From Ramazzottius varieornatus (taxonomy: Eukaryota; Animalia; Tardigrada): a stretch of DNA of 64,000 nucleotides. The notes beneath the pieces were generated by a model. It had not been told where the DNA came from. It was given only the letters and a program-made list of their open reading frames with translations, and ran no database searches. Made by a program: the position numbers and the translations under genes. Below are positions 27,093 to 48,483 of the stretch, piece after piece. The stretch lies in the NCBI GenBank assembly GCA_001949185.1, contig BDGG01000005.1:2829972-2893971 (forward strand), read 5' to 3'. Position 1 is the stretch's first letter. Each line of letters begins with the position of its first letter.

Positions 27093-29713
27093 CTAAGTCT
27101 TGGCATGGACAAAAGTCTTGGCAAGTGGTTTCCGAAACAGTGGCTCCGCCAGCTGTGTTCGCTTACGGTTGAAACAGAACCGGGCTGACATCCCGTTGGC
27201 CACTGCGCGAACTGCATCCTTCAGACTTTCCTCGGTATACTTCCGGCGTTTCTTGCTGTTAAAACTTTCCGACATTTGCTAAGCTCAAGTTACTCAAGAC
27301 TGGAAGAAAAATTCAAGAAAGAATACGACAGAATTTCAAATGATACTGGAGTGACTGAACAATAAAAAGCGCATTGCGAAATTCCGACTTCATGACGTCA
27401 CACGACCAGTTTCTGTTCCGATACAACATTCTTTAAGTTAAAATGCCGCCGGGCCGTGCTGCCAAGACTATTGTCCATGCCAAGANTTAGGCCAGGCGCG
27501 TGTACAATATCTCCACAAATGAAATTTTGACTGTACTGTACGACCACTACGCGTACCCCGTCAATTTTATCATTCGAAAGACAGGATTGTTGTCCGTCCG
27601 AACTGGCACTTTTTCCTTCTCGCTTTCTCACCTTGTTTCTGGGCATGTGTGCTGAACTCCAAACGTACTCGGGCGGCATCAGCACGTGTGCTGGCACTTG
27701 GCAGTGGTGCCGAAGATCAGCAATGTCTTTGGCGTGTTTATTCGACTTCCGGTGCGAGGACTTCAACATGGAAACACGTCCGGCCCACAGGACTGCGGTC
27801 AGACGTAGATGGTGTGAGATGAAGAACGCATGAGACCAGAAGCGTCCCATTCATCCGGTAGGGTGGAAGATCCAGGCAACCTTGCGAAGACTCGCAGTTC
27901 CGTGTCGGGTAGGATGTCTTTAACGGTCACGAAATAGATGGAATCGCGCTGTTGGTACGACATGACATTGATTTCGGGTAAGCTGAAAGACGGCTGGAGG
28001 AAATTTGTCCAACTGCAAACTTCGTCGTTGCGAAGATCGTAAGCCATGAAACCCCGGCCTATCTCTGACCAGTGGACATATCGAACAGGTAGTGAAGGTT
28101 TTTTTACCTGCTCCAGATGTAGCAGGGGAGCCACGAGAGGCCTAAAAACTGTGCCGGTCCTTATTTTACGTTTCGTGAAGAGGGAAATGTTGTTGCTGTT
28201 GTTGGAGCAGGATACGCGGAAGGCATCTGGTAGGGAGGAGTAAGCCAGGGAGACATCTCGATGACGCCTAACGAGTGGTGATCGAGCGGCTACTTAATCT
28301 CTATAATTTCTCGTCCTGCGTGTACCACTGTACCTCGTACTACGAACTTACGATCATACAGCACCACTGCTGATAACGAAAGTGACCCCATAACGTGCCA
28401 TCGTGTTATAAACTACCGGAGTGGTCCTAGTGGTGTCCGTTTTACAGTAAAATAATACCGAACAGCCTCGAATAGAGCAAATGACCACAGATCGACAAAC
28501 ACAGGTAAATTAACGCAGTCAGAGGATACCATAGGCTAACGGGGGAGCCAAAAGGAAGGAAAAATATGCACATGACAAAAGAATAGAATCTGCCCCCACA
28601 AACTTTTCTATGGCATACAAGCGCCAGAAGAGGAAAGGCAGCCTCGCGCTGGAGAAATGACGACAAAAACATCGCAGTTGCTAAAGGTGAACGAAAGGAC
28701 TCACTCTACTTTAACAAGAATAATTAGTCTGAGCAGAGAAATGTGATCGGATGTCATACAACGCCCCAAGTCGACCCTTCGAAGACCTGACATTCGGTCA
28801 AGCATCTGCGTCATCTTTTGCCACTGGTCCTCTCGATGCTCCAACTATCGAGTGGCGAACCGAAAGCTCTTTGCACGCTTATGGCATATCAGGTATTCAG
28901 GTACGAAGTTATCTGCAACAACAAGGAACCGGAAGCTATCAATTCCGATTCATAAATTCATCAAAGTGACAGAGCGCTTACCAAGACTCAAAACTTCGCT
29001 CTTAAAATTCTTACAATCTGCGAGAAGGATCACCACTACTCGTAATTTTGATGTTCTTATAAGGTTTTGTGCATTCAAGCAAACTCACATCAGTGAATGG
29101 AGTTGCAGAGATACATGTGCGGTAATTATTCAGGTCCAAGAGAACACTAGTACTGATACAGTCGGACGGCCAGTCCATGTTTGTCCTGGGACGCTTTGGG
29201 CGCAGGCATTTCAGGCTTCGGACTTTGGACGGGCACCTTTTGCTGTGGTGTACTGTTGTTGTCGACAGGAGCGTCAGTAGCAGCGTCAGGCGGGACGATA
29301 TGTACTTCCGGTCGCTTCGTTGGCTGCTTCTTCAGGTATGCACTGTGTTCAAGCTTGGCTGCTTTCTGTGCTCGACGTTCCTTCAGGCGTTCCTTTGAGT
29401 GCACCGACAGTGGCTCTTCTGGAAACAGGGTGGGGATGGCTCCAGGTTTTAGCTTGGGCTTGCAGGGGTTGGCGAAGATGTTTCCTTTACCGTCGTGCGA
29501 TGCTTCCATGCGGATGATCAAATCAGGCTCAAAATGACGCTCACATACTCTGATCTCCTTGGGGAATTCCCTGGGCTCTTCCCATCTCTTTGGCAGTACC
29601 TTGATCCACTCATCCCGAGAACCCACTGGACAGACGAAGACGGCGGGTTTGGGACCGGAGTAGGATCTGTAGGAGGTGAGACATCCAGCAGCGCGGCAAC
29701 CAGAACGAGGCAT
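27093..29713 (-). pseudogene. THAP - PR knuckle - PR/SET - pipsqueak HTH paralogue A (decayed)
   Basis: THAP CRAAGC...W...VCERHF...KLKPGAIPTLFP (29713-29420); LAYSSLPD...GTVFRPLVAP...CSWTNFLQP...QQRDSIYFVTVKDILPDTELRVF (~28250-27890); psq RKYTEESLKDAVRAVANGMSAR (27275-27190); linkage of the parts into one gene is inferred. Confidence 0.75.
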
Positions 29714-29979
29714 TCCTGCAAAAGGCAAACACGACACCGTTAGACCAGTTGTTAGGACTCCCCACGAGGGAGCAGCTCCACAAGTTAGGATACGATCTGT
29801 GATGCAACTGATGTTGGTTCTGAGGAGAGCTAGTCTTAGCTGGACATGTGGAAGTTACGAGACGATGACAAATTATCGAGTAAAATACGTTGACCAAGTT
29901 ATCAAGTATCAACAAGACTTGCGAGCAGCTAGGCTGAGATAGCTAACACAGTAAGGCTCACCAAACTAACTTTACTGTC

Positions 29980-31015
29980 ACTTGTTGCTCATCCCGACTA
30001 ACGCCATCTCTTTGTTCCTTTGTTGAATCGGGTGCGAGAACAGCTGCAACAAGACTCTATGCTGGCTCAAATCAATGTTCCAAAAGCAGGCTTGACTTAC
30101 ACGGAACTCTTGCTGGGTAGGCTGCAGCTTCGGGCGGAATGCAGCGAGTTTCCTGTTCGCCAAATTGCGGACCTTTTAGGGACCTCAATACGCCCTTGGT
30201 TGAGACCAACGCGTTGCATGTTGGGGATCATCTTTTCGGCGTCCGTGTGGTTGAAACAGGGTCCGTCGAAGTTTTGCTTGCCCTTAAGGCGATCTGCAAG
30301 CCTATTTGCGCTTACGATGAATGTAAGTATGGGGAATACCTTCGAACAATTAACAAGCCGTTGCCGTAGTACATAGTACATTTACATGTGCGTTGGTTGA
30401 GTAGGACCAACAAGGAACTGCTCGAAACCACGCTTGGAGGTTCGTTGGTTTACGGTCGGAATGACACGATCCCATTCCCTCAACGCGTTTTGTAACGAAA
30501 ACTTAAGAAAGCAACCTCCATCATGAGTACTCGATTGAGTACCACGACGGCAGCACTCGTCTTCCGGACCAGCCACGCCCAAGATGTTGGGCACTTCCGG
30601 TCCCTTCTTTGAATGATTCTCCAGAGCAGCACCAAGCTAACGTACTCGCTTAGCTACTCTCTCTTCAGGGGATGCGGCAGACTGACGTCTCTTCTGTATC
30701 ACTGCCCATTCTGAAAAGATGGTGGAGCAGCCCCAGGTTGTCAGTAGAGGCTTGATGGGATAGGTGACCATGTTGCCGCTCTCGCTCTTGTCACAGAGCG
30801 GCGGGTGATCAGCCAAGGTTCGAAGAAATGACGTTCAAAACCACGATCACCTTCGGGGATTCCTCCTCCTCTTGCCATCTTCTTGGCAGCACTATTGGCC
30901 ATTCATCCCGGCTGGCGGTCAGACATCTAAATACTGCAGGCATCGGTCCATCCACTCCATCGTAGGCCTGACGAAAGGTGATGCATCCAGCAACGCGACA
31001 CTCAGAACGAGGCAT
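29980..31015 (-). pseudogene. THAP - PR knuckle paralogue B (highly decayed)
   Basis: MPRSECRVAGC...AVFRC...SRDEW..VLPRRW THAP with frameshift; NFDGPCFNH knuckle remnant near 30260. Confidence 0.6.
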
Positions 31016-31508
31016 TCTTCTCTCTTAAATCCCGTTCGCCTCTTCACGCTAGCATTGCAGACGAAAGGTACGCCATCCCAAGAAAGCACAAGGTGTTGGC
31101 CATTAACAACGAGCGTGGGAAAATCGTCGAGTAAACTGAAACGGTTACAGAAACAGAACATATGACATGAACAAAGAGTTGATGAAATCGACTCGTTCTG
31201 GATGCCAAGTAGAAACCACGGGTGTGGTGATCCACCCGCAATGGCGATTGTACTTGGCTTCTAGTCTGCATAGCCCATCTTAACTTCTCACGTTGGGCTT
31301 ACGGCCTGCCACGCAGTTTGGTTGGCTAATAAGCGACAAGCGATAGTAAGTTTGTTGTTGTTTTTGCTAAGCTTATAATATAGTAGGATTTCCGGTTGGT
31401 CTCTTCTAATACTATGAACTTTCTCAGCCTTTAGAAGTATCCCAAGCCTACTGGATGCTACCGCGACCCAGAGGTTCTAAGATATACTTCGTCTCCTGAC
31501 AGCCAAGA

Positions 31509-34500
31509 TATGGGCGATACCAGATTCTCAAGATGCGTCGTTTCCGGATGCCCACAATCTCCAGGGATTACGCTGGTCCACCTGTATCTCAGTTCAGATC
31601 CCCACAGAAGTCTCGAGAAGAATGGTGAAGAGCGATACCGCACAAGATGAATCTCATGCCTGGAAACATCACTATCTGTGAACGACTCTTCGAGCCTGAT
31701 GATGTTCAGCGTGCAGGAAGACGTCTCGGCTCTTCCGGCCATATCGTTACCTACAGGCTGGCCAAACCTGCACTGAAGCCTGGCGTTATACCCACGAAGT
31801 TCCCTGATCGTGCTTTCCGACGAAATCTAGGGTACCGAAGGCTCCTAGGACCTCTAGCGGTAGGCTGAAAATTTGGAGCCTCAAGGCGGAGAAATGAGCT
31901 TAGATGGCAATCATGGCATACTAATTTCACCGTTACTTTGTAGCTATCGCTGACTTCTCTTCTGCTCTATCCCGAAGCGTGAGCACAGCTTCACATGATT
32001 CCTTGGAACCGTCGGCTCATTACTTGAAGCAGAAGTGCATTAGTCAGACTTGCGTGAATGGAGCGACACTGCTGAAACGGCGGATAAACCGTTCCACATG
32101 TTAGTGACTTTCGCAAGTTGGCAGTATCAGCCCAGTTTACAATACAGCATCGATTTAAGGTCCAGAAGAGATTCCGGGGAACTACAAAATTTTAGAACGA
32201 ATAATTTTGCGTATTTTCGTTTTAGATTGTGGGAAATGTCAGGCGCACCAGGACGGTCCATGCTTTGAGCATGCACTTCCGGCAGACGTGATTTACGATA
32301 AGCCACCAGTTCCGCTAGCCTACCCCCCCCCTCCCAGATAACCTATTCATATCTTCACGGCTGACGAGTACTGGTAAACATCTCTCTGAATTCAGACAGC
32401 ATACATGTTCAGATGTTCCTACATTCTCGCATCTCTGTTGCAGAGGATGGACTTCCGGCTGTCACAGCCGAGGAATCTGTCAGCGCTAAAGACACGATCC
32501 GACCCGGCATGCTGTTCGGCCCGTTGATCGCTCCTCTGGTCCCACTGGAAGACGTCGAAGAACCTCCGCGGTATGTCCTATGGTCGGAAGACAGAGAAGA
32601 GTTTCAAGCCTACGACCTTCGGGACAATTTCGTCTGTAACTGGACCAAGTTCATTCGGCCCACTTCCGACTTTGCCCAAGTCAACGTCGTCGCCTACCAG
32701 CAGAAGGACCACATATACTTCTTCACCGTCAAAGAAATGCCTGTCGACACGGAACTGCGCGTCTTTGTCAAAGTCGCCAGTAACTGCAAGGTCTTGGAGG
32801 ACTGGGTTTCCACACTGGTCGGTTAGACCATCCATCCACGAGACCCACTGTCGGAAGCACAGTCGATCCATTTCGTGCTCCATACTCGACTACGTCTACG
32901 CTGCTTTTTTGTTGCAGATCACCTGCTGGCCGATCGCGATCAGATGGACGTGCCAATGGCGGGAGATGCCGAAGACTTCCCCGACGTGGATGATCGTTAT
33001 CCTTTTAGTCCCGAAATACCACCTCCTTTAGCTTGCAGCAGCAATAAGGGAAAACGTATGACCACGTCGCTATCCATAAGACCAAGACGGAATTACGCTC
33101 GAAGGGCCAAAATGCAGCGGACGAGCCATGAAGATGGCAGCTCGGAAAACGACGGGTGTGGTCACACGTCGGACGAATATGAATAGTTGGAGGACGAGAA
33201 AGAATTGACCGAGACAGACAATGATGTCAGTGAAGGTGACTTTGAACAACTGGAAGAGTATGAAGACGAAGGAAGGTGATGTTAAAAATACGACAAAGTC
33301 TGGTTGCTGTAGTCTGAAATTTCTGGTTGAAGGCTCGGCAAACAAGCTCGGCTAGATTGTTCGCCCAAGTGGCGCACGTTTCAGGAGATATCGGCTGGAA
33401 GCGTGCGCCATCTGAGAAATCATCTTGGCGTGTCTTGAAGTGGCGCACCTTTGCGGCAGTATTGTAAGGAAGCGTGCGCTACTTGGGAAAGCGATCTGGT
33501 CGATCTTTGTTTGTCAACCTTCATTTTCTCGGTTTGAATTTTACATGACTGTCACTGTGAATAAGCATAAAGCCAGAAAAGAAAAAACACTGTGAGAAGA
33601 AGCGCAGTCAAAAGCAAAAAGGGGAAAATGTCAGGAGATTGGAAAAGAGGATAGAGAAAGATGGAGGTATTGTTTATAACTTTATCAAGTCGGATGACTG
33701 TTATCCGTTCGAACTACCAACCTTTCGTTTTGGCAGAGCCTCCTCAAAAGAGAAAACTGACGGTTCAGCCCCAAAGGAAGCCTTTAACAATGGAGCACGA
33801 ACGAGCCAGACTAGAGCGGGTTAGAGTGTTTTCAAGGAGCGCCTGGAAAGTGCGGTCGGAGTTGTCTTCGGATGCCGTCAAATACAAAAAAAACGGTTTG
33901 TATTTGTACTGCTTTGATGACAGTGCATGCTTGACATTTGGAATATAATATGGCTTTGTTTAGAGTTGAATAGCGAGGAAAAAGCGGCCTTCGAAAGATG
34001 GCGAGAGCGTCGAAAGAAATACATGAAGGATGCCTACAGAGAACGCACTGAAGTAAACCGACGATACGCCAACGGTGGTAAGTTTTGATGGAATCTCGGT
34101 CGACACCACTCGAATGTTCGAATAAATTGTGCGCTTATCTGTCGTAGAAATCTCTCTGGAAGAAAAGCAGGCTTTGGAGAAAAGCGGTCCTTTCCTGGTG
34201 GATCAAGAGGCGTTCTTGCTGCTGCAGCAGTCTTTCTTGGTTAGTGATCAGTGTCTTCAGTCGACAGAACCTCCACCAAACTTTCGTTCGGAGCAGCTGG
34301 TTCGACCGCTAGGGCTGACTGCTGGAGAATTTGCTGACTCTCGGACGAGTAGGGTTGGCCCGCGTAGCTCATCATGGAAGACGGAGCAGGGGTGCGTTGC
34401 CGTCTGTAGGTGCATCGACGAGCTGACTTATTCGGTAAACTACAGATGTCCAGCTTCTCCACCTTCCGTCTCGATATCTGCGTGAGAATCGTTACCAGAA

Positions 34501-34891
34501 ATCAGAGAGCCTATCAGCTGTTAAATAGCGCCTGTCAGTTTTCCAGTGCGTTTCTTGGCGCACGGTACATGCATTCTTTTCCCAGTGCTTGATTTCTCCT
34601 GGCCCTCAGTCTGTTTATCTTTGTTGCGCAGGAAGGGGCAAGAACGGGCTTTCATCGGGAAGTACGGGTATGAAGCTTACGCGAACATAGACAAGGCGGT
34701 TGACGCTGTGATGAATAAGGGTATGACTGAAGCCGAAGCGCGGAAACTGTTAGATTCTCAGTGAAAATACTTTAAGGTTCCGCTTGGTCAGAGCCGGGTT
34801 CCTCCCTCAGAACAATGTCGCGAATACCAAAGCCCCTGACGCTGCTGCCATGGCTGATAACCCGGCCGTCTCGGATAAATTGAAGTGCTGA
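31509..34891 (+). pseudogene. THAP - PR knuckle - PR/SET - acidic/charged region - pipsqueak HTH paralogue C (disrupted)
   Basis: CVVSGC...ICERLFEP...ALKPGVIPTKFPD; CGKCQAHQDGPCFEH knuckle (~32228); PR/SET exon 32444-32821; psq-like IDKAVDAVMNKGMTEAEARK..ENTLRFRLVRAGF; frameshifts and stops. Confidence 0.75.
33334..33517. repeat. Palindromic intronic repeat, two-hairpin copy
   Basis: CTCGGCAAACAAGCTCG...CCAAGTGGCGCAC...GTGCGCCA...AAGTGGCGCAC...GTGCGCTACTTGG...TTGTTTGTC. Confidence 0.8.
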
Positions 34892-35095
34892 GTGACTGCT
34901 CTAGAGGGGAGTCACGATGGGCCTACTGCTTTGAGTGGGAGGACCAGTGCTTCATAGGACCTTCATTTCATAGGTCTTTCATTTCGTTGTTTTATCGGTC
35001 TTAAAGTCACGTTACTACTGCTGCTCGACTAATTTAGATAGTTCGATCTCTGGCCGACGGATAATGTAAGGTTTGGTATTTAATTTCAATCCGGG

Positions 35096-35905: not shown

Positions 35906-36728
35906 AATCCGGGCAAGCAAGCGGAAACAACTTTGTGAGTGACACTTGCCTGGTCGTGTAATTCGTCTGTTTGTAGAAATTTCTCTGGAAGAAAAGTAGC
36001 CCCCGAAAACCCGTGCGACGAATGACAATAGTGTACGATAATTTCAGAAGAGCTTTAATAGCTCCAAGTTGTATGGCTTGAGACAAAATCGCAAGCGTTC
36101 ACTGTCTCTGTTAGGGTGAACGAGAAGGATATTAAATTTTGTTGACCAAGGTTCTACGGTCAGACGTTTGTCATGGTGGTCTTTCGTTTCAATAATGTGC
36201 TCAGGCCCGCGAATGGGTTTGATGTAACCTAACTTTCTCATCTATGTCTCTTCTTGGGTTCAGGTTAGACGGCAAACTCGAAACAGCAACAAACGAAAAT
36301 GAATGAAGCCCCGTCATACAGACAATCACATTCATGTGTGACATGCTATCCCATGGGAAACGGCATATGCTAAAACCAGGGCCTGGACTGGATCGGTGGA
36401 TCCCTGTATCTGGATTCTGTATCTGGATTACGCCTGGATCTGTACTCTGTATCTGGACTATCATATTTTAAAACGGAGGTGACAGGTGAATGACAAAATT
36501 TTTTTACAAGGAACCACCGAAAAAAATCCCTAAATAAGACAGACAGAAATTCAGAAAACTGAAAATTCAGAATGAATTTTCAAACGAGGGGTACGGGTAT
36601 GATCCATAAAACATTAATGGTAATAGGAAAATAATAATTGATAAATTGAAGAGAAAAACTTTACCAGATATTTAAAACTGTCTCAGATGAATCTCAAACT
36701 GTTGTAGACAGGGCGTCTGTCGCGTCTT

Positions 36729-37368
36729 CTACCTCTTCTTTCCGTCTTTTTTTCCTACCTCTGGGTACGCTTTCACCATAGCATACTTGACCGAGTTCTG
36801 GATCGATTTCTGATCAGACAGGCTCAGCTCCGCGTAGTTCTTTTCTTTGAAGGAGACAGCAAGGCGTTCATACAGAACATCAGAGTAAACAAAGCTTTCC
36901 GCGTCTTCTTCCACCATCGCTGTTATCGCATATGTTAATGATCCTGTTGGCTTTGATGAAATTTCTTTTGTTGCGGTTTCAACAGCCGCATGCACGGGCG
37001 TGGTAAAAGGAGTGGGTGGCGGATTGGACGCAGGAGAATGCGCATACGTAAACATGTCGCAAAGCCGATTGTTTTGTCTGCAGTTTCGCCCTCCTAATAT
37101 TCCCCAGATATCGGTCGACAGTTTCAACTGAGTTTTGCAAATCTTCCGCAATTCGCCAGCTGTTTTCTTCCGGACCGTAATTCTTCCACTTGACAAGGTA
37201 CTGCTTTACTCCGTTTTCCGTCCTGTCTGCAATTGTTCCGTCCACTTCATATTCCAAAGGACCTTGATCTTCCACTGGAACAACGAGGAGAGGGGACGGC
37301 GGCGGCAATGAAATTCTTGATAACTGTCGTTCCTTCACTGGCACAACAAAGTCCAAGGGTCGCATTTT
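36729..37368 (-). pseudogene. Chromodomain protein inside the MULE (probable frameshift)
   Basis: EYEVDGTIADRTENGVKQYLVKWKNYGPEENSWRIAEDL chromodomain with Y/W/Y cage residues; C-terminal helical region lies in an overlapping frame. Confidence 0.75.
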
Positions 37369-37720
37369 CAAATGACAATATTTTTGATCAAGTTCAGTAA
37401 GAAATGCAAATACCGATGTTAAGACCAAACGTAAAATTCGGGCGCAGAGTGAACTCTGACTAAATGAGTGCATTAAGCGCGATCGGATTTACCAAGGAAC
37501 GAATAACACGAAATGACAGAATACTGGTCGGTGGCTGACCGTGGCTAACCTCGCCCGGTTAGAAACGACAGTCACTACCCGGTTCAGAATGTCAAACTGG
37601 ACAGCTGATTTCCTGTTGTCAGTTCGAAATACCGTGGCAACAACTTTTCGCTAAGTCATAAAACGGGTGACTGAAGACGCAGAATATAGACAAAAAACTT
37701 TACTGTGGCTAATTTCGAAC

Positions 37721-40700
37721 TTAGACCTTCTTTCCGGTGAACTGCTTCAAAAACTTTCTGTGGCTTGGCTCAAACGATTCTTTGTCCTCGGTTCGAATCA
37801 CGATGTCGGATGGGTTGAATTCTTTGTCGTGCTTCTCAACGCATTTTGCGTTAGCGTGGAAGTAAACCGGAGAAACTTTTCCATTTTGTTCTTGATTGTT
37901 CTTCTTGAAGGATCGTATCATCTGACTGACGACGACCAGGTCTTTCGGGGGACTGGGAGCATTACCGTCCAACCGGAACTCGGTATGACAACCAAAGCAT
38001 TTTTTCACACTTCCGTGACAGCCAGACAGAAAACGAAGCTCGTAAGTGAATGGCTCGACAGCTGCAACGGAATTCTTGGTTCGCTTCTTCGCTGTGTTCT
38101 CTGCGGCTGTTCGATAAGCCAAGGCTTTACCTGAAACTGACCAGCATCACACAATCGTTCCGCTACCATGAGGTCAGAAAAGATGAAATACCTTCAGCAG
38201 AAGTTAAAGTTGAAACCTGCGACGTCTTTTCGGTAGTACCAAGACGGCGCTGGGTCCGGTTGTGACGTTTTAGTCCAATGCCTTTTGCAAGCTGGAATGA
38301 CGCAATCTTGTCTAACAGGGCCTCGGACTTCTTTTTGTTGTCCCACATTGCGTATGCCGCGCTGACTTTCTTGACGGCAGCGACAGCCAGCGCGTGTTGA
38401 CATATCTTCCCAACTCTGTATGGAAGACAAGTCTTTGCGTCGCAGGCTACCTGTCCGGTCTTCGGGTTAATGGTAACGGTATGAAATTGATTTCTGTGAC
38501 TGGCCACAATGAAGCACATGTTGTCATCACCCGGCGCAGCGATGATATACTTCTTGTTGTCCACCAAAGCCCGCGCTTTCACTTTGAGCTGAAGACGCTG
38601 TCCACCTTGTATATTCGCAAAGCCATCGAGCAGTGACTCTTCAGAGTCAACAGGGGAAGCACGAGGGGAGGAAGCTTCGGGCAGAGTCTTCTGAGTGAGC
38701 TCGAAAACTTCGCCTTCCAAAGAATCCTTAACGATAACCACGTCTACTTCCTTCTTCAACACAGGCTGGGTGTGTATCTTTCTCAGAAGCTTCTTTCTGT
38801 CTTTTTCCGATTGCCTAATTAAAGACTTAGAATTGTTGACTTTCGAATTTATCAAAGGCTTGAGCTAACGAAAGGGACGAGACTACCGCCTGATCACTTA
38901 CACCCGAAAAAAATCTGTGGCCCGGACTTTCAGATGGTTGTATTGGTCGAGCAGATCCATTCCAGGTGTTCGGTCGATCAGCGTCTCTTCAATGTTCTTT
39001 TCTTGTTTCTGCACGAGCTTCTGCATTGTCTCAACAAAGGGAGTGAGCTTCATCTTCTCTTTGCCTGTCTGCCGCTTTATTACGGAGTGCATACATTCGT
39101 TTGCGTTCTGAGTATAGACGTCCAAGTTCAGCTGACAAGCGATCCGTGTCGACAGCGACATGCAGTTCTGTATCAGGTGCTCTTTCTTCTCCTTGAACTA
39201 CGAGACAAACTCAGCGCCTTCTTCCATGATCGCAGTTCATTTCTCATACAGGGCACCAGCTGCAGTCTCGAAGTCTCCCCCTGCACAGTCCACCAAACCA
39301 GCCGTTTTGTCTGTGCCTTGCTTCTTTCCGAAGATGTCTTGAATGACCTGCATAGAGACGTCAGGTTTTTCCCAAGGGCACGAAGCTTCTTCTCTATGTT
39401 ATCGCGCATGTGTATGTCACAGAGAAGATGGTTCGCCGCTGGAAAGAGATCTTTGAACGGCTGGTACAAAGCCGGATCACCATCAGTGCCATACACCTTC
39501 AAGTCTACCAACTCAGAACAATGTTTCTTCAGAGAAGCTGCCCTCTGCCAGTACGTCGCTCGCGACTTGTCTTGATGGATGAAGATAGCACCTGAACATG
39601 AACAGGTTAGCTTCACATATGATTTTGATAAGCAGTGGACTATCAATACCGAAACTCCTTTAGTATCATCGTTAATGAAACTTACCGAGCATGACTGGAT
39701 GATCCCCAATATTGGCAGATCTCGACCGAAGAAGCAGGTGTCGATACGTCACAGCAGTAACGAAGATCGTTCCCACGTTGAACATGGTGTCGACGCCAAG
39801 CACAGAAAAATTATCAGCATTCGTGCAGAATCGTACCATGTCATCGAGCTGTCTCTGTGTTGCGCAGAAGATGAAGAGCGATGGGACTGCGTGGATTTCG
39901 TTGATGAATCTGAGAGACGGAAAGTCGAATTCTTTCTTGCATTTTTCCTGGAGTCCCATGATGTCATCTACTGGCTGCGCGTCTTGAGTTAAATTTCGGA
40001 TTTGTTTCGTGCCGGTTGGGATACTAGCGGGGTTCTTTACTGTGTAGATCTCATCGCGATCCTCTTCAAAGGTCTTCAGAGCGATGCCGCGGTCTTGGCT
40101 CTTTAATGACTCCTTCACGCTTTGATAGCTTCGACTGTAAGGCTTTGATCCGTGTCAACGGTTACCATGCTGTGAAGGTTCGAAGGAATATGCCTCCTTG
40201 TCAAACTGGTAATACAGAAAGGAGTAATCACACTTGGCATGGCTGTCGTCGTGAGCGCGAATGTACACTCGTCTGAAGTCTTTGGACGAGTTGCAGATCC
40301 AAGTCTGTCGAGTGAACCAGTATCCCTCTTCATCAGCGTCGTACTCTTCCTTCGTTGCGCTCATCAATTTACCTTCAGTGCGGGTGAAATAGAAGGAGCG
40401 CGGACCGTGTGCTGCAGAATATGCTCCGTTATCGTCGGAGAGAACATCACGCGGATCAGTCAGCGACTTCTCATGCATGATTAACACACAATGATCTTCT
40501 GGTCTAAATGGCGGATCTTTCGCGACAGGATCGATTTCCAAATGGACGTCCAGTAACAGCTGGACAGCATCAAACGTGCCGACTGTCTGGTTCCTTCCTC
40601 GACTGAAGCAGTATGTGTTAGCGTACTTGCAAGGCGAATATCCCAAGCTACCTCTGTAAACAATATTAACAGTCGCTTGTTGATTTCTGAACGTGGTTTG

Positions 40701-41385
40701 TCTTGTGAATCGGATAATAGCAATTATCTAATTATAAGTTCGCAATTAAATTTCTGATGCAAAGCTAGTCTTAAACCAGAACCGGCTCACCTGAGCTCAT
40801 CAACGTCCTCTGGATCGAGGTTGAACGATTTTTCTGCTTCTGGTGTCTCCTCGTGTTCGGAACTGATGGTCTGGTAATCATCGGTTACTCTGAATGCTGC
40901 CTTCAAATTCCTCCGCGCACCTTGATCCTCTTCGTCACTGCTGTCGAGCGTGATGACGTCTTTACTTGGCTGCTTCTTTCCGGTGATTGAGAGTACGGTT
41001 GACTGTCTTCCCGCACTTCCCGACAAGTACGCGCTCAAGTGTCTTTTGAAGCCCCGATCAATCTAGAAGACCATCAGACCATCACATGTTGAAATTGAGA
41101 TTATGGAGGTTATCGTGTTCGTATTAGGATAACTAATTAATCCCTTACCGCTTGAAACGACGATGGTTTTTTAATGGGGCTGTTTGGCAAACTGCTTTTA
41201 ATTTCGGAATTATACGGCACAAGCAAGGGAAATCTGCAACCCAAAAGCGTGATGGTCAATATTCAATTTTTTTTCATGATCTGATATTTTTCTAATGGCT
41301 TAATGGCTAAAACGCGAATGTCCACTTACGATGATTTCTCTCTGCTGTCGTTTTCGGCCTCATTCCCGCTGGATGACTCCTCCAT
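37721..41385 (-). pseudogene. MULE transposase with SWIM and C-terminal Cys/His finger, multi-exon, disrupted
   Basis: VLGVDTMFNVG, YGTDGDPAL, HLLCDIHMRDNI (CxxH), TQNANECMH, SWIM CDAKTC...ICQH, C-terminal CFGC...YFHANAKC; TGA at ~40155, frameshift near 39365 and further stops. Confidence 0.85.
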
Positions 41386-44300
41386 GACCCAAAAGTGGCG
41401 ACCAAGAGGCAGAATAACACTCACGAAAATATCGGATTACGTTTCAAATAACAGTATCAAAAAGACGGAAATGAGGAACAAAACGTCGACCGTTATTGCA
41501 TTTGTGCATCAGACACTGATGAAGCAATATCGCCATCGTGTGAGCGCCAAAAGATTTCTCATTTAAGGCTGGTCCTTCACTTCATTGTCTGTAAAAAATC
41601 TCCCTGCAGCTTTGTTGTTCTGTTGCAGACTGGCGCCCTTCACGGTATCAACATTAGGAGCGTGATAAGCCGGTCGAGTTGCATCGGTGGCCGTTACTGC
41701 GTAGTTATGTGAATTTACGTACAGAGACAACATTCCATCTTTGTAGAATATTATTCGGAAAATTTTCGGCTGCATATTGTATTTTTAGTTTTTAAAATGT
41801 ACGTCAGTCCAGATACAGAGTACAGATCCAGGGGCAATCCAGATACAGAATTCAGATACAGGGATCCACCGATCCAGTCCAGGCCCTGGTTTTAGCATAT
41901 GCCATGGGAAACAAACCGTACGTATATGTCTATAGTAAAACTTGAAGGTGTAAATTTAAGTTTGTAAGCAATACTGAAGACATCTTGAAGCTCTATAACG
42001 GAAGGACTGCATATTTATAAAAAGAAAAGCGGCAAGCAACATTTATACCGTACCATCGGTTCTGTCGACGTCGACCATGCAGGGGAATTGAAAACCTTGT
42101 TTGCCTCGAGTGGCGCTGAAGATGTGGCAGGGTCCTCGGAAATAGTTCTCTATGTTCCCCTCGAGCAGCGAACCAGTCAAAAAAAACCGGAGACTCAGCA
42201 ATGGTCGTTCCTTTGGCCAGCTTTTTCTTGAGATACAGCCTATGGGCTGCTCTTTTGAACGTGGCTCGCGCCGTCTCGTGTACCCTCCTTTCCCTGTCCC
42301 CCAGGGCTTCTGCAACACAAAAATCAAAGGCAGGTATGCAAATCACTGTGTAGTTTGTTGCTAAAGACTCAAGGGACTGCACCTCCTCGTAGAATTTTCT
42401 GTCGCAATGCTGCTCGCTTCTTTCGACGGTAGAGGTTAGCCTTAGCTTGCTTCGCGTCGCGCATGCAGAATGTGCGCAGATTCAAGATAAAGCTTGGACA
42501 TTTTGATGGTTTTTGGAAGTCCTCCTCATGTCATAGGTATAACTCGCATCCACACATCCCGCTGCCCGACTGGACATGCAGCAGAAAGTTGGAGCAGAGA
42601 TTAGAGGAGGTAGAGGAACCGCTGTATATACCGTAGAGGCGCAAAACATGGAAGCGGTAGAGGCACTTACCACCACGGCGAACAATACCATTGGCCGACA
42701 CGCACAGAGGCCACGCCCCAGTAGAGTCGGGTACATTACGGTTACTCGACTGTTAAATTGATAAGGTTCCGGTTATACAGCGTCGAAGCACGATGATATG
42801 GAACCGTGCAAACTCAACATCACCCTGCAAAGCTAACGCTCACCAGTAATCCGAGCGTTCACATGTGACGAGGAGAAAGCAACAGGTGGAAGGAAGCTAA
42901 GAAGCTTCGTCGAGCACGGGATGTCAAGCTGCTTACGCAGTAACTTGGTGAACTCATTCAGAAGAGCTTTATTTCTCACGTGTCTTGCTCAACCGTAAGT
43001 CATGTTCGTCTGCCCAAGTGGTTCGATACTTACCTACGGTAGCACCTCTGCAGTGGGCCGTATTTAGGTGCTGGCCAGACCTACATCACAAGCGCAGGCG
43101 CAGCATGTACCTGCATACATAGATAATGGGCAACGACTCGACCTGTTAAGTAAGACCGAACTGTTGGTTTTGTCCCAACAGCTAAAGGTCATCCAAAGTC
43201 ATCCATTTGACCTCGACCTTTGATGGTCACTAGTCTGGCAATGACTGTATCAATGGAAGACTGGCGTCACGCACGTACGCATTCCTCTACCCCATCTAGC
43301 CTCTCTGGTTACAGGAGTAGCCCCGCTGTACGAGCGTGAGCTGGTGATGCAGTCCAGACTCCGGGACGCAGCACCCAGACATTCTTGCGCAGTTGAAGTT
43401 TCGGTTAGTAAGCTTTCGTCAACCAACCTCGTACTAAAAAGTGCTGCAAAAACTCTTAAACATTGGCGGTCGAGTCCGATGGAAGAAAAGGAAGTTCTCA
43501 GAGGATACCCAAGGGGACTCTGAATCGCAAACTCATCAGGAAGCTCGATCTCCAGACAGCAGGATCCGTTTTTCAGGATGATTCCCGATTTTTTTTCTGG
43601 TTTTTCCAATTTGTTTAGTTTTTGCTGAATCATGACTTTATGTCTGATCAATCAAATTCGTACGAATCAACGAAAGCAGTTAGTTGATTAACAAAGAATT
43701 AATTACTCTCAGGACCCTGCCGGTCGGACAAATGGTACGACCGACAGGGTATGACGTAACTCGTGCTGCCTGCTGCGCGATCGGCAGCGACGCGGCTGGG
43801 TAACTAGGTAGAAAGGTGGATGATCGTGCGATGGTAAAATCGCCAGGGTGGGTGGGTAGGTTGGTTGACCACTAGTGGTGGACCATTGATCTTGGTAGTT
43901 TGACCACTAGTGGCTAGCCGTTGGTCTTGCTGTCTTGACCATTTGTGGTTGACCATTGGTCTTTGTAGGTTGAGCACTAGGGACCGGCCATTGGTTTTTC
44001 TATGTCTGACCACCGATACTAGCCATTGGCATTGATAGGTAGACCGCCCAATCGCAGCTGGTTCATTCGCCCGTCCTTTCTGTCTATTGTTCAATGGGCG
44101 TGGTAACCGGTCTGGGCTTTTTATAACGTCAGATGTCAATGAACCTTGGTTTCTGTCCTTTGATCTTTCCGCCACAGGCTCAGGCTTGCCATAGTTTCCC
44201 CAATTTAAGGGCACTAGAATGCCTGAACAGCTTTCTACGATGACTCCAGCGATCTATGATTCATTCTAAAGCTCCGGTGGAAGGCCAGCCTTTTGGGCGG

Positions 44301-44685
44301 AGCTCTCGCAGAAACAACAGAAAAAGTACTGCAGTGTTTCTAATGCAACGCATGAAGTTTGAGAAGTACAAAGTAGAAGGTATGTTCGCTAAAAAATAGT
44401 ACCATTGGTCGAGGGTTGCTGACGGTCTGATTTCTACTCAAGCGGTACCAACGGTGACGCTTGGTCTTACCATACGGCCCGCCATCGTAAAGCGCACCGG
44501 AAGTGGTTCGTATCGCAATCTCTCTAAACTCAGTGTCACTAGTTTGTTAATTACCGGTAGTACTGCCGTTCCAGTTTCCAGAGTCCAGACTTTCTCGCTC
44601 GGGGCATCGTTCCTTTTGCGCAAAGTTGTTCGGATGATCCCAGTACTGGAGCTCGATCTCATCGTATTAGCGCGTGTTGTATGAA

Positions 44686-47600
44686 ATGGCGAAAAGATCT
44701 TCAGGTTGTGTTATTCCAGGTTGTCCAACTCGATCGCTAAAGTACGATGGTCCGAAAGTCTCCGCGTTCGATTGTCCGAAGGGCGCTCGTGACACATGGC
44801 TCAAGATTATACCTCGTAACGGCACAGCCAGACTCAACAGGATCGTCGTCTGCGAGCGACATTTCGAGCCGGACTGCATACGGCGCGACAGTCATGATAT
44901 GGATGACGACGGCAACATCATCATGGTCCCACTCAAAGTCCCCAAATTGAAACCTGCTGCCCTGCCGACCATATTTCCCGACAATCCGGACTTTGTCCAA
45001 CCGAAACTACCAAAGCCACCAAAAGTTGTTAAACCCCCGAAACCCTTGAAAGGTAGAAAGGTTCGGCGGAAGTGTCTCACAACAGTCTGATAATATGCAT
45101 TTAATGTTGTCCAGATCCCGTGTTCTCCAGTTTTCCGTTTGCCCGAAGAAGAACCGGGAAGCCTGCCCCAATGATCACCGTACCCCGGGAACCAACACCT
45201 GAGCCTCCGGAAGGGGAGTTGGCTGTGGAGAGTCCGGTGGATAATGAGGCAGCTACGAAGGAACTCATATACCAGCGAGCATGTAAGGCATCCCCCTCCA
45301 GTCGCATATCGTCCTTACAGCTCTACCAGTTGCCGTACCATATTATAAAGAAGAATAGAGCCAATTTCTCAATGTCTCCGAAGGTTGCGAAAAGTGCGAC
45401 GCCCGTTTGGACGGACCATGCTTCGAACATGCACTTCCGGCTGACATCATCTACGATAAACCACCCGTTGCCCTGGCATATGGATCCCTCCCGGACACCT
45501 TAATTATCTCTGTGAAAGAATTAGACGCAGGTCAGAGGTACCCCTGTACAACAGAGTTTCAAATGGCCATGCGTTATATAACTGTTACTGCAGCGGATGG
45601 ACTTCCAGCTGTCACAGCCGTGGAATTTGTCAGCGCCAAAGAGACGATCCGACCTGGCATGCTGTTCGGTCCGTTGATCGCTCCTCTGGTTCCACTGGAA
45701 GACGTCGAAGAACCTCCGCGGTATGTCCTATGGTCGGAAGACAGAGAAGAGTTTCAAGCCTACGACCTTCGGGACAATTTCGTCTGTAACTGGACCAAGT
45801 TCATTCGGCCCACTTCCGACTTTGCCCAAGTCAACGTCGTCGCCTACCAGCAGAAGGACCACATATACTTCTTCACCGTCAAAGAAATGCCTGTCGACAC
45901 GGAACTGCGCGTCTTTGTCAAAGTCGCCAGTAACTGCAAGGTCTTGGAGGACTGGGTCTCTCCGCTGCTAGGTAGGACTGTTCAACCACCAGACATACCG
46001 TCGAACCCGATTGCTGGCAGCGAAGCGGAGGTCGTTTTCTCGGACTTATTTGACCATGTTGCTCTCCGTTTCAGATCACTTGTTGGCCCACCACGAACAG
46101 TTCGAGACAGGTATGGACGGACGCACCTCTGACGAACTGGAACAGTTCGAGGACGGGGATGAATTGACCGACACTGACAAGGATGACGTGAGCGAAGGTG
46201 ACTTTGAACAACTGGAGGAGTATGAGGCAGAAGGTGAGGGTGGAGTGATCGCGAATGATGTCCTTGTTCGGTTCGTTTTGGTACTATGCTCGCTCTGACC
46301 AGGGATGGAAAAGATCGCCAGACTGGAAATGTTGGAAGCACGAAAACGGAAGAGTCAAATGCTGGTACGGAACCGCGAACTGCGAAAAGCTCGACAGCTG
46401 GAGCGGAACAAAAGTGGCGACAACCCCAGCGACAACTTCCCGTTAGCTGGGGACTACCAGGAAACAGACGATGAGGGGGAAAGTGAGGATGGGATGGACA
46501 GCCTAAACCAGGACGAGGACATGGATGATTTTGGTATGGAAGGTGGGAGGTGAGCGAACAAGTTCGGGATTATTGTCATCTCAAGTGGAGGACGTTTCCA
46601 GTTGAAAAACATGAGAAGCTGCGCCACTTGAGGTTGTGATCGTCTCGAGCTTGTTTGCCGGCATCCCCAATTATCATGGTTTATCTTGCGTCAGATTACG
46701 TTGTTTTTCAAAACTTGTCAGAGTTGTCGGACGAGGAGGATGAAGAAGACTACCAGCACAGACCAAAGGCCCGCCGTGATTTCGGCCACATGACCCGGAA
46801 GCAACGAGCCGCTGCACGTAGAAGAATGGAAAGAGCGCGATACTGGAACGGAGGTGAAGATGTTGAGTCGCCCGAACTTAGGATTGATCCTTCTGGAATG
46901 TGAGCAGTCTAGTGGTGTTTAACAGTTTTGGTTTTGCACAGATATGACTGCCGAAGAAAAAGCGGCTTTCGATGCCAAGGAAGATCGGCGTAGCGACAGA
47001 CAGGCTCTTCGAAGGGGAAAACTTGATCGAACGGTACTGTACAGACTAGCTACGGTACATGTTCGATAATCAGGCCTTTTCACATTGTACGCCCATCTTT
47101 TAGAAAAAGATAAGACATGAGAGAAGACGAACCGGAGGTGACGGTAAGATGATTGCAGTATTGGGCCGGAAAACTTTTGATTATGTCTTCTGACGAGTAA
47201 CGTTGTCATAGCAGAGAAAATGGAAGAAGTTCGTGCAGAGAAGCGAGTGGTAGTTAGTCGGAGCAAGTTTTCTGATATGACGAAGGAGGAGAAGGAAGCT
47301 CATCGAAAAGAAGTGGCGCGGAGATACAATGCGAAATTACGGGAAAAAGTGTTGGCAGAAGGAGAACGATACAAGAATGGCCGTAAGTCGTTGCGAAATC
47401 TCACACAGCGAGTTCGATCAATTTTGTGACTGAGTCTTTGTAGATATGACTCCGGAGGAAAGAGCGGCCTTTGAGGAGAAGCAGAAAGCGGTGGAGGAGA
47501 AGGGAAAGAAACAGTACGCGAAGACAACGGAAGAAGACTTACGCGCCAAACGAGAAGCTCACCGACTGCGAAGGCAACGCTTCTGTGATGGCGGTAATGC

Positions 47601-47964
47601 TTTAGCTTCTCGTAAAGCCTTAGCTAATTGCAATTTCGTTCGGCTCATTTGTGAGTTTGTTGGGTATTTGTTTTGTTTTCAGAAATGACGCCAGAAGAAA
47701 GTGCGGCATATTGGCGAAGGCGGATACGGCACAACCATATGTCCAAACTGAGACGAGCAAGAATCAAGGCTGCGAAGTTGGGTCAGTTCATTTTTGCGAT
47801 GCTCGACTTAAGTTTTCCGGATACGGAACTTTATACGGCAAATATTCTCATAATAGTACGGAATTCTGATGCTCTTTGCAGGTTTGAAGCCGGCCGGTGA
47901 CCATGGAACTTCCCAAAGCAGTATTCGACAGAGTGGTTTGCGGAATCTCGAGGCGGGATCTTAA
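44686..47964 (+). CDS. THAP - PR zinc knuckle - PR/SET - acidic - charged helical repeat protein (paralogue D, apparently intact, ~12 exons)
   Basis: CVIPGC...W...VCERHF...KLKPAALPTIFP THAP; CEKCDARLDGPCFEH knuckle; GMLFGPL...NWTKFIRP...NVVAYQQKDHIYFFTVKEMPVDTELRVF PR/SET; manually chosen GT-AG junctions are phase-compatible to TAA at 47962-47964. Confidence 0.8.
46554..46660. repeat. Palindromic intronic repeat copy
   Basis: CTCAAGTGGAGGAC...GCGCCACTTGAG...CTCGAGCTTGTTTGCCG in intron 46543-46721. Confidence 0.75.
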
Positions 47965-48483
47965 AGCCAGGTGACGTTTTTCGCGTATGGCTAGAAAACG
48001 GGATTCTTCCAGAATCTTCCTCGAAGTATGGGGGGAGGCCTCCGGGTGTCTTTCATCGAATATTTTCCTCGTACATTACTGTATGCAACTATCATTCTTT
48101 TGACCAGTACTGGTCACCACCCGAATAGTTCTTTGCATTCTCCTTTCCCGTTTTATGTTACGTGGATCGAGAGTACTCCGGATATCGTTGTAAGACTGGC
48201 CAACCGGGGTCAACCTGATGCCAAACTTGATTTGCCTGTGGCCACACTACTCCTTCTCTAACGTTACTTTAGCAGGCGCAATAAAACAGTCAAATTTAGC
48301 ATCGGGTTGGCAAGCATTTCCGGCGTTGTAATTACAACGGAGTCAGTCAGAAGCGTTAGGTAGCATGGTGGCCACCCAATTATTCAAAGTTGTGATTAGC
48401 TGCTGTGCTTACGAGTGATGTTGCAGCTCATTTTAGCTACAGTCGGACTTCCATCCCGCGATGGCAGCTTAACACTCATAATA

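Follow-up and report, generated by a model that had tools for sequence, protein, structure and literature searches.

A transcribed gene joining a THAP finger to a PRDM-type knuckle and PR domain in the tardigrade Ramazzottius varieornatus

Introduction

PRDM proteins are usually taken to read DNA through C2H2 zinc fingers, and in most of them the PR domain is a protein-interaction scaffold. In PRDM4, PRDM7/9, PRDM10/15 and PRDM11 the PR domain is preceded by a zinc knuckle (CX2CX7CX2H). Catalysis by PRDM9 needs the tyrosine of a motif at the C-terminal end of its PR domain, and we know of no robust methyltransferase activity for PRDM10 or PRDM4. The C2CH THAP finger stands full-length at the N-terminus of THAP1-11 and of the P-element/THAP9 transposases, carries an ALPTIF-type box and in many THAP proteins is followed by a long helical region. 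Some host genes arose by capture of a transposase DNA-binding domain; one of them is SETMAR, whose protein unites a canonical SET domain with an entire mariner transposase.

Here we analyse a 64,000-nucleotide stretch of the Ramazzottius varieornatus genome (contig BDGG01000005.1, positions 2,829,972 to 2,893,971; hereafter the window, to which all coordinates refer unless a scaffold is named) with a cluster of four related gene copies, A to D. Copy D resembles each of the systems above: it has the knuckle followed by PR of the PRDM proteins, the full-length N-terminal finger, box and helical region of THAP proteins and, by analogy with SETMAR, a SET-type domain together with a transposase-type DNA-binding domain. 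Unlike the knuckle PRDMs, it has no C2H2 array, KRAB or SSXRD domain, its reader is the N-terminal THAP finger, the Trp-Tyr pair of its PR domain is lost, and its tail consists of basic helices of no known family that open with MTxEE. It differs from the P-element/THAP9 transposases in lacking a catalytic domain and possessing a PR domain, and from SETMAR in carrying a THAP finger only rather than a whole transposase.

A sequence-only reading of the window had proposed that a THAP-PR architecture might be undescribed. Our literature search found no paper describing it, but databases already contain the architecture, in the form of uncharacterised proteins from two tardigrades. A large PRDM survey holds no text match for tardigrades or THAP (PMC4760075).

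Results

Copy D is a spliced, expressed gene

In copy D (RvY_10860) a THAP finger is joined to a PRDM-type knuckle and PR domain in one transcribed gene (Table 1). As the sequence-only reading had it, D splices to an intact frame, which runs from an ATG at 44686 through 13 exons to a stop at 47962-47964; the product is identical to the 738-residue database protein GAU99925.1 (RvY_10860-1, here P0151), on which the Pfam searches for D were carried out. All 12 introns have GT..AG borders and lengths of 61-188 nt. A single RNA contig (X2 record 9, 2594 nt) covers 44554-48209 with all 13 exons and 12 of 12 joints GT..AG, and so answers in the affirmative whether the THAP and PR exons share a transcript, a check that the same reading had suggested. 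Spliced contigs of three studies carry the joints from THAP to knuckle, and D was found transcribed in runs of four studies; that these runs are RNA is only a guess, though the GT..AG joints speak for RNA.

Table 1. Features of the cluster and its surroundings (positions in the window; aa, residues of the copy D protein).
Feature	Position	Strand	Evidence or detail
Psq-like HTH remnant 3' of A	27096..27275	-	Pfam HTH_psq E 0.043, 14 bits against a cut-off of 20.4
Copy A	27850..29713	-	THAP 29713-29393, knuckle region ~28355-28293, PR 28254-27850
Copy B, fragment	30226..31015	-	THAP N-terminal half 31015-30881; knuckle remnant 30300-30226
Copy C, pseudogene	31509..33273	+	THAP 31509-31808, knuckle 32228-32302, PR 32449-32820, acidic exon 33160-33273
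Gene-conversion partner in C	32542..32807	+	identity to D 45692-45957
Psq-like HTH remnant 3' of C, frameshift-split	34600..34858	+	read from translation; no Pfam match
5.5-kb element between C and D	36362..41903	.	98-nt terminal inverted repeats, 97% complementary
Copy D transcript (RvY_10860: 5' UTR, 13 exons, 3' UTR)	44545..48351	+	spliced RNA contigs, 4 runs / 4 studies
Copy D CDS, 738 aa	44686..47964	+	translation of RNA-supported exons = P0151 = GAU99925.1
Copy D CDS exons 1-5	44686-45052, 45115-45282, 45384-45530, 45594-45971, 46075-46233	+	
Copy D CDS exons 6-9	46303-46533, 46722-46853, 46942-47033, 47104-47143	+	
Copy D CDS exons 10-13	47212-47382, 47444-47593, 47683-47781, 47882-47964	+	
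THAP zinc finger of D, aa 8-97	44707..44976	+	Pfam PF05485, E 1.5e-10, profile positions 1-87 of 87
Pre-PR zinc knuckle of D, CEKCDARLDGPCFEH (CX2CX7CX2H), aa 180-194	45386..45430	+	kept across tardigrade family
PR domain of D, aa 237-337	45620..45922	+	Pfam PF21549 (PRDM2_PR), E 6.8e-18, above cut-off
Gene-conversion tract in D, 266 nt	45692..45957	+	identical to C 32542-32807
Acidic region of D, larger part, exons 5-6	46075..46533	+	composition; one long predicted helix
Basic helical repeats of D, five, exons 7-12	46722..47781	+	regex [DHE]MTxEE; K/R 66/212
Psq+chromodomain gene 3' of D, about three psq-like HTHs	50055..51397	+	HTH_psq 19.3 bits (just under cut-off); Chromo E 1.7e-6

Domain architecture of copy D

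The domains of D follow one another as THAP, a Pro/Lys-rich linker, a PRDM4/9/10/11-type knuckle, PR, an acidic stretch and five basic helices with MTxEE openings. Its THAP finger keeps every zinc ligand (C8, C13, C56 and H59), and W38 and the ALPTIF box are present too. The family profile aligns the knuckle of D to that of PRDM11 (CESCQEYFVDECPNH), which is also where the match to PRDM9 begins; the Pfam knuckle family (PF18445) had no match in P0151, and the knuckle exon alone had none in the PDB. The PR domain is closest in sequence to PRDM10 among PDB entries (E 7.9e-10) and Foldseek returned PRDM1, PRDM11, PRDM10 and PRDM9 (E 1e-7 to 2e-9), so that all PDB matches, by sequence and by fold, are PRDM PR domains. 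LAYxSLP linkers had been reported for A, C and D; we saw this linker, which is conserved in the family, in A and D. In Pfam searches of P0151 we found no C2H2 or psq domain at E<=5, no transposase family or catalytic region, no recognised repressor domain and no family in the C-terminal half. On the Pfam results and the spliced contig, the THAP-knuckle-PR arrangement without C2H2 fingers that had been read from the letters is real in D.

The acidic region as a whole spans aa 355-500 (D/E 50/146), with an AlphaFold helix at 398-443. The [DHE]MTxEE repeats start at aa 511, 533, 598, 634 and 684; the second, fourth and fifth begin exons 8, 11 and 12, and the first and third lie within exons 7 and 10. 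AlphaFold models the tail as long helices (pLDDT mostly 85-97); the THAP finger and the linker stay unfolded in the model (pLDDT 25-45, THAP ~30) because the alignment contained no THAP homologues, so that this part of the model is uninformative. The ESM Atlas gave no large cluster with THAP and PR, and no informative match to residues 484-738. We considered the MTxEE repeats as bZIP basic regions and rejected them, as the spacing fits one repeat of one paralogue and no zipper follows.

The PR domain has lost its Trp-Tyr pair

The C-terminal PR motif reads ELRVFV in D, against EL.VWY, which means that Phe-Val has taken the place of Trp-Tyr. No member of the clade that D belongs to retains the pair (ELRVFV, ELRVYN, ELRVYI, ELRVFA); by comparison, PRDM10 has ELKVWY, and tardigrade PR proteins outside the clade have EL..WY. 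Since the pair is missing, methyltransferase activity of the clade's PR domains seems unlikely, and the term chromatin module, used for this region in the sequence-only reading, was too strong. One could still picture D as a THAP-directed histone methyltransferase, with a PR domain active as in PRDM9 and a THAP finger that sets the sites of the mark; the knuckle and PR form a module of PRDM9/7/11/4/10 type, and the fold matches PRDM9 SET structures. This reading is nonetheless very improbable given the replacement of Trp-Tyr in D and in all other clade members, the requirement for the tyrosine in PRDM9, and best matches to PRDM10 and PRDM4, the two proteins named above as having no robust activity known to us. 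With the pair lost, the PR domain of D would most likely serve as a protein-interaction scaffold and not as a methyltransferase.

Decay of the other copies and probable gene conversion

Copy A retains open frames for THAP (a 196-aa ORF, Pfam E 4.3e-10) and PR (E 1.8e-11; the annotated 82-aa protein P0009 lies inside this ORF), which are 47.6% and 42.8% identical to those of D, while its knuckle region contains not one cysteine and lies in a different frame from the PR ORF. Copy B, which over its first 42 nt shares 86% identity with the start of A, is reduced to the N-terminal half of a THAP domain (tblastn E 0.012; local THAP HMM E 0.0018), a frameshifted second half with a Cys->Phe change and a knuckle without its first two Cys; it has no PR domain. 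Copy C has a THAP region that matches the D finger at E 1.4e-15 (40.7% amino-acid identity) and has a TGA at 31626-31628, neither N-terminal Cys and a His->Leu change. Its knuckle (CGKCQAHQDGPCFEH) is intact and directly followed by a +1 frameshift in a poly-C run; the PR frame is open (E 3.3e-19) and the acidic exon holds a TAG. The THAP family signature (C2CH, about 40-50 residues from the Cys pair to CxxH, Trp, AVPTIF-type box) is thus found in D and A, and absent from B and C. A fifth THAP scrap (42535-42576, minus strand; 14 residues, E 0.11) was not counted.

The sequence-only reading had put a THAP domain at the start of each copy, which is right in full for A and D; in B only half is left, and in C the domain is degenerate. 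It had described the knuckles correctly (clear in C and D, degenerate in A and B), and Pfam agrees with its PR/SET domains in A, C and D. Among the copies it took to be decaying, B and C are dead, and A combines open THAP and PR frames with a broken knuckle region. Birth and death is a fair description of the cluster, with D as its one live copy.

Outside the shared 266-nt tract in the PR exon (Table 1), the flanking exons and introns of C and D are 31-62% identical. As judged from this pattern, the PR exon of C appears to have been overwritten by conversion from or to D. We dropped dN/dS of C against D because their similarity is that of a conversion tract and not of divergence. RNA unitigs of 266 nt in runs X1 and X5 end exactly at the bounds of the tract, an indication that these runs contain C-type flanks as well.

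The state of the neighbouring copies raises the question of whether D is itself a young chimera, transcribed with no maintained function and headed for decay like A, B and C. B and C are broken, as is the knuckle region of A, and C is apparently transcribed though broken. Protein searches found no orthologue of D in other species; a word-indexed search with the whole D protein returned only D itself and RvY_00429, and one with the PR exon returned nothing in its length band. Against this stand an open frame of 738 codons across 13 exons and 12 canonical introns, the retention of all THAP and knuckle zinc ligands, and expression in runs of four studies. In addition, the THAP domains of A and D share 47% identity and still keep the family signature, implying purifying selection over a long time. 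We therefore give this scenario a small but appreciable chance. Given that B and C are both dead, that A is in doubt and that the searches turned up no orthologue elsewhere, D itself could be under weak constraint.

Psq-like pieces and mobile elements around the cluster

The psq remnant by A lies inside a 428-bp element with 46-nt inverted repeats (27078-27505), and that by C matches the psq gene 3' of D weakly (E 0.33). This psq+chromodomain gene is probably the counterpart of both remnants, and the psq-like pieces most likely belong to it or to the small element with terminal inverted repeats. The psq-like HTHs noted earlier downstream of A and C do exist, if weakly, but are not part of the D protein. 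Within the 5.5-kb element that is inserted between C and D we found a chromodomain ORF (36982-37473, minus strand; Chromo E 2.7e-10).

With transposons nearby, and THAP being a transposase DNA-binding domain, the THAP and PR exons could in principle be separate genes, or the unit transposon cargo. The exons are, however, joined in spliced contigs, D has no transposase catalytic domain, and the copies are 40-47% identical and limited to one locus. No terminal repeats flanking D were found, for which reason we reject the cargo reading; separate genes or cargo can be dismissed with near certainty.

Relatives in the genome lack the THAP finger

The nearest relatives of the cluster are four knuckle+PR copies on scaffold C1 (RvY_00429, RvY_00431, RvY_00432 and RvY_00436). 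Like D, this group has the knuckle, a LAYSSLP linker, a PR domain without Trp-Tyr and MTxEE repeats (the latter in RvY_00429 and RvY_00432). Unlike D, it has no THAP exon in the whole 26-kb region (C1:1,249,000-1,274,999), where the best hit of a THAP scan had an E of 0.16. In RvY_00429, RvY_00432 and RvY_00436 we found neither THAP nor C2H2, and the earlier idea that THAP replaced a C2H2 array is not supported: with both absent from the closest relatives, the loss of C2H2 fingers and the gain of THAP may have been separate events. Nor is there an expanded family, as had been suggested; only one THAP-PR gene of the genome is intact, and among the PR-family copies THAP is confined to this cluster.

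In the tree, A, C and D fall together with RvY_00429, RvY_00432 and an ENA fragment (SH-aLRT 99) in a clade that is a polytomy, and a single THAP gain within the cluster was not rejected (AU p 0.28). The best PDB matches of the family profile are PRDM4, PRDM10 and PRDM11 (E 2e-27 to 1.5e-22). As to a PRDM10/15 placement, PRDM10 gives the top individual PDB match, and proteins named PRDM10 rank among the closest matches from outside. In the tree, however, the clade falls into a tardigrade-rich group of poor resolution, apart from PRDM10 of molluscs and annelids. The nearest THAP relative of D is a two-THAP, host-like gene on C12 that has ordinary genes as neighbours and is itself no transposase; we identified no transposase source for the THAP finger of D.

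THAP and PR are also paired in predicted proteins of Paramacrobiotus

Outside the cluster we sampled architectures among the 150 best PR matches. Five predicted genes of Paramacrobiotus metropolitanus combine THAP and PR (LOC129585518, LOC129585549, LOC129585551, LOC129585452 and LOC129587659), as do the cluster representatives P0030 and P0049. They resemble D in having both domains in one predicted protein, and one of them, P0108, also has no C2H2; in contrast to D, most have 1-7 THAP domains and long C2H2 arrays, and all are gene predictions only. The PR domains of these proteins come from lineages other than that of D (a single clade of all THAP-bearing PR domains was rejected, AU p 2e-23), the THAP domains cluster apart from those of the window, and the THAP domain of P0108 is 44% identical to that of a Harbinger-type transposase protein, P0168. 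The pairing thus appears to recur in tardigrades, where two species together show it in three or more distinct PR lineages.

This recurrence bears on whether D is a fast-evolving repressor comparable to KRAB-ZNF proteins, whose transposase-derived THAP finger reads transposons while PR and tail recruit silencers. Silencing systems of the KRAB-ZNF kind are marked by numerous paralogues whose DNA-contact residues change fast, by binding to transposons and by a domain that recruits corepressors. Such a role would be in keeping with the birth-and-death turnover of the cluster, with the transposon insertions around it, with the pairings in separate PR lineages, with the Harbinger-like THAP of P0108, and with C and D THAP exons that are far more diverged than the converted PR exon. 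On the other hand, the genome has a single intact gene and no array, no repressor domain was recognised, the nearest THAP relative of D on C12 is host-like and not a transposase, and pseudogene decay explains at least part of the low THAP identity of C. We hold this role to be unlikely. The same goes for a broader proposal, by which tardigrades repeatedly wired THAP fingers, some transposase-derived, onto PR domains to make fast-turnover, DNA-guided chromatin regulators doing a job like that of KRAB-ZNF/PRDM9, with D as a C2H2-free member; we offer it as speculation.

Discussion

The THAP-PR fusion is a lineage-restricted domain shuffle. The explanation that we favour, and think probable, is that D is a real, expressed, lineage-restricted gene in which THAP was added to a knuckle-PR-helical-repeat family, and that it would act as a THAP-guided transcription or chromatin regulator. 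A THAP exon would have joined the 5' end of this tardigrade-specific family, from which C2H2 fingers had already been lost or in which they were never present. Tandem and inverted duplication may have followed the THAP gain, and then decay of B and C as well as gene conversion between C and D. In the protein, the THAP finger would provide sequence-specific DNA binding, and the tail of charged helices may serve in oligomerisation or in contact with nucleic acids or nucleosomes. From the sequence of D we infer a nuclear location, DNA binding and a loss of catalysis.

The practical weight of these results is limited, as the genome has one live gene, its PR domain is probably non-catalytic and its function is deduced from sequence. 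If the broader proposal were true, such a tardigrade class of THAP-PR proteins might recognise transposons or mark specific sites. As it stands, D is a transcribed PRDM-type protein in which a THAP finger is the sole recognisable DNA reader. Together with the recurrence of the pairing, this makes tardigrades a natural setting in which to study how a chromatin-associated module can be re-targeted through exchange of its DNA-binding domain, and whether transposase-type fingers supply the raw material.

Copy D is a single, spliced gene

The window is Ramazzottius varieornatus DNA and corresponds to C5:2829972-2893971 in a 55.8-Mb assembly of 200 contigs. Searching proteins with the translated PR exon of D (one of four THAP/PR paralogues, copies A to D) matched the 737-aa protein RvY_10860-2 at 98% identity. 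Its 738-aa sister, RvY_10860-1 (GAU99925.1), carries the UniProt name ‘THAP-type domain-containing protein’; public databases already list the D protein, labelled hypothetical. Contigs from four sequencing runs of four studies, placed on region 43000-48900, revealed 12 splice joints across D, each GT..AG and skipping 61-188 nt; the RNA label of these runs is a guess, but splice joints like these are expected from RNA. A single contig of 2594 nt (run X2, record 9) starts in the THAP exon at 44554 and ends at 48209, past the stop, placing the THAP and PR exons on one transcript, a point on which the sequence-only reading had called for RNA evidence. In two further runs (X5 and X11), contigs likewise connect THAP exon 1 with exon 2 and with exon 3, which encodes the knuckle (the pre-PR zinc knuckle). 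Joined locally, the exons form one open frame of 738 codons (ATG at 44686, stop at 47962-47964) identical to GAU99925.1, so the start, stop and intact spliced frame proposed from the sequence agree exactly with the RNA-supported exons and the database protein. We conclude that D is a real, single gene.

D combines THAP, knuckle and PR domains

The profile search proposed for D returned a THAP domain over the whole Pfam profile (aa 8-97, E 1.5e-10) and a PRDM-type PR domain (PRDM2_PR, aa 237-337, E 6.8e-18), with no other Pfam family at E<=5, including C2H2, psq and knuckle models. All THAP zinc ligands (C8, C13, C56, H59), W38 and the ALPTIF box are kept. The stretch CEKCDARLDGPCFEH (aa 180-194) has CX2CX7CX2H spacing and is conserved across related tardigrade proteins. 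In a family profile, the PRDM11 knuckle aligned residue by residue with that of the D family, and the PRDM9 match also starts at the knuckle; the profile matched PRDM4 (2e-27), PRDM10 (1.6e-26), PRDM11 (1.5e-22) and PRDM9 (2e-16). AlphaFold, given a 15-row alignment, folded aa 180-340 at moderate to high confidence, and the top Foldseek matches were PR/SET domains only (PRDM1, PRDM11, PRDM10, PRDM5 and PRDM9). The THAP part was left unfolded because it had no aligned homologues, and is uninformative here. C-terminal to the PR domain lie an acidic stretch (50 of 146 residues D or E) and a basic one of 212 residues with five units opening [D/H/E]MTxEE, predicted as long helices (pLDDT mostly 85-97); units 2, 4 and 5 each begin their own exon, and no Pfam family or Atlas cluster accounts for the tail. 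The proposed THAP-knuckle-PR architecture without C2H2 fingers is therefore real, in D. Neither a THAP+PR/SET protein nor an expansion of PRDM genes in tardigrades was described in the full-text literature searched, in which few subscription journals are covered and absence is not proven; a survey of 976 Prdm genes contains neither ‘THAP’ nor ‘tardigrad’ in its text (PMC4760075).

In human PRDM10, PRDM4, PRDM1 and PRDM11 and in other tardigrade PR proteins, the PR domain ends in EL.V(W/F/Y)Y, whose Tyr is required for methyl transfer in PRDM9. D reads ELRVFV there, and every clade member has a non-Tyr residue (YN, YI, FV, FA). An active chromatin module thus overstates the case; judged by this motif, the PR domain of D is probably not catalytic and, given the missing Tyr, would act as a scaffold, as it does in most PRDM proteins.

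State of copies A, B and C, and gene conversion with D

Family turnover is real, and the claim that D is intact and the rest decaying holds for D, B and C. Copy B keeps the first THAP half; in the second there is a frameshift and a Cys has become Phe. What remains of the B knuckle is missing the first two Cys, and B contains no PR domain. In copy C, the THAP is without its two N-terminal Cys and its His and is interrupted by a TGA (31626-31628); a +1 frameshift lies in a poly-C run right after an intact knuckle, and the acidic exon contains a TAG. C is a pseudogene. Copy A is mixed, with open THAP and PR frames (see table) and a knuckle region without any cysteine that runs into a stop and is not in phase with the PR frame. 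The knuckle is thus clear in C and D and degenerate in A and B, as first read. Public annotation at A comprises only an 82-aa protein inside the PR frame.

The perfect-looking PR exon of C is explained by 266 nt fully identical to D (D 45692-45957, C 32542-32807), beyond which identity in the adjacent exons and introns falls to 31-62%; this tract is a gene conversion. In runs X1 and X5, both tract borders coincide with the ends of RNA unitigs exactly 266 nt long, which suggests that those runs also contain C-type flanks, and C is therefore probably a transcribed pseudogene.

A and B share 42 nt around their start codons (29674-29715 and 30976-31017, 86% identical). Copies B and C are divergently oriented, with starts (31015 and 31509) separated by about 500 bp, and an inverted duplication is therefore part of the cluster. 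A 14-residue stretch, CPVGQRDVWMRVIP, at 42535-42576 (-) beside an inserted element is similar to the core of the A and D THAP domains (E 0.11) and may be a fifth copy, almost erased.

Features of the window
Feature	Position	Strand	Detail
Copy A	27093-29713	-	
A THAP		-	open 196-aa frame; Pfam E 4.3e-10; 47.6% identity to D
A PR		-	open frame; Pfam E 1.8e-11; 42.8% identity to D
428-bp element	27078-27505		46-nt inverted repeats, 96% complementary; holds psq-like ORF near A
Copy B	29980-31015	-	
Copy C	31509-34891	+	
Short palindromic repeats	33334-33490, 46579-46667, 52576-52739		units of ~53-77 nt, MITE-like hairpins
5.5-kb element between C and D	36362-41903		98-nt terminal inverted repeats, 97% complementary
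Chromodomain ORF in 5.5-kb element	36982-37473	-	
Copy D	44686-47964	+	
psq-chromo gene	50055-51397	+	~three psq-like HTHs, then chromodomain; HTH_psq 19.3 bits, just under cut-off; Chromo E 1.7e-6
Rhodopsin-family GPCR ORF	55673-56812	-	7tm_1, E 6.6e-21
GAF + cyclic-nucleotide phosphodiesterase exon	60107-60964	+	

Psq-like pieces and mobile elements

The psq-like HTH read downstream of A and C exists as weak pieces and is not part of the D protein. A separate gene on the same strand, 2.1 kb past the D stop, carries psq-like HTHs and a chromodomain, a pairing of which we know no other case. Downstream of C, a psq-like HTH with a frameshift weakly matches this gene (E 0.33); the piece after A scores 14 bits for psq. 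Given these decayed counterparts, the duplicated unit was, with moderate confidence, probably two genes, THAP-PR then psq-chromo. The 428-bp element around the piece after A is possibly a pogo-type element with an internal deletion; the sole N of the window (27486) lies inside it.

Three other ORFs of the 5.5-kb element gave no Pfam match at E<=0.001. A palindromic repeat copy accounts for the unusual length of D intron 6 (188 nt), and another directly follows the acidic exon of C. The GPCR ORF and phosphodiesterase exon are ordinary neighbours.

Relatives within and beyond the genome

‘Expanded family’ proved too strong, since within this genome THAP of the D type is limited to the A-D cluster. 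A transposon-targeting role would be speculative. By PR domain, the closest relatives are RvY_00429, RvY_00431, RvY_00432 and RvY_00436, four knuckle+PR copies on scaffold C1. With D they have in common the knuckle, the LAYSSLP linker, the MTxEE repeats and the loss of Trp-Tyr, but they carry neither THAP nor C2H2. A direct unfiltered scan of C1:1,249,000-1,274,999 found no THAP (best E 0.16), with a model that recovered all four window copies. A PR tree built on 137 rows grouped A, C and D with RvY_00429, RvY_00432 and one ENA fragment in a single clade (SH-aLRT 99) that had no internal resolution. Keeping A, C and D together was not rejected (AU p 0.28), so a single THAP gain in the cluster is enough. 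That THAP replaces the C2H2 array fits the architecture of D; the THAP-less relatives also lack C2H2, however, and C2H2 loss and THAP gain therefore need not be linked.

The nearest relative of the window THAPs is a two-THAP gene among ordinary genes (C12:210052-211100 (-), flanked by ubiquitin-like and acidic leucine-rich-repeat genes), whose second THAP is closest (E 1.3e-4). A second PR cluster (C2:3965606-4073042, at least 4 PR-domain exons) belongs to a tardigrade-rich PR expansion separate from the D clade.

Among the 150 best PR matches, 7 further proteins, all gene predictions, combine THAP and PR, 5 of them named as Paramacrobiotus metropolitanus. Six of the 7 (P0020, P0030, P0042, P0049, P0067 and P0113) carry C2H2 arrays along with 1-7 THAP domains; P0108 (LOC129587659) lacks C2H2 and combines one THAP with a PR domain at the C-terminus. 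The PR domains of the 7 proteins belong to other lineages than that of D, and the THAP domains of these proteins fall apart from the window THAPs. A single clade uniting every THAP-bearing PR domain was rejected (AU p 2e-23), for a group chosen after the first tree and with THAP-less models that may miss 5' exons. Within Paramacrobiotus metropolitanus, P0108 and P0168 (LOC129587227), a protein with the Harbinger-type domains HTH_Tnp_4 and DDE_Tnp_4, have THAP fingers of 44% identity, which hints that a transposase was the source of THAP in one THAP+PR fusion.
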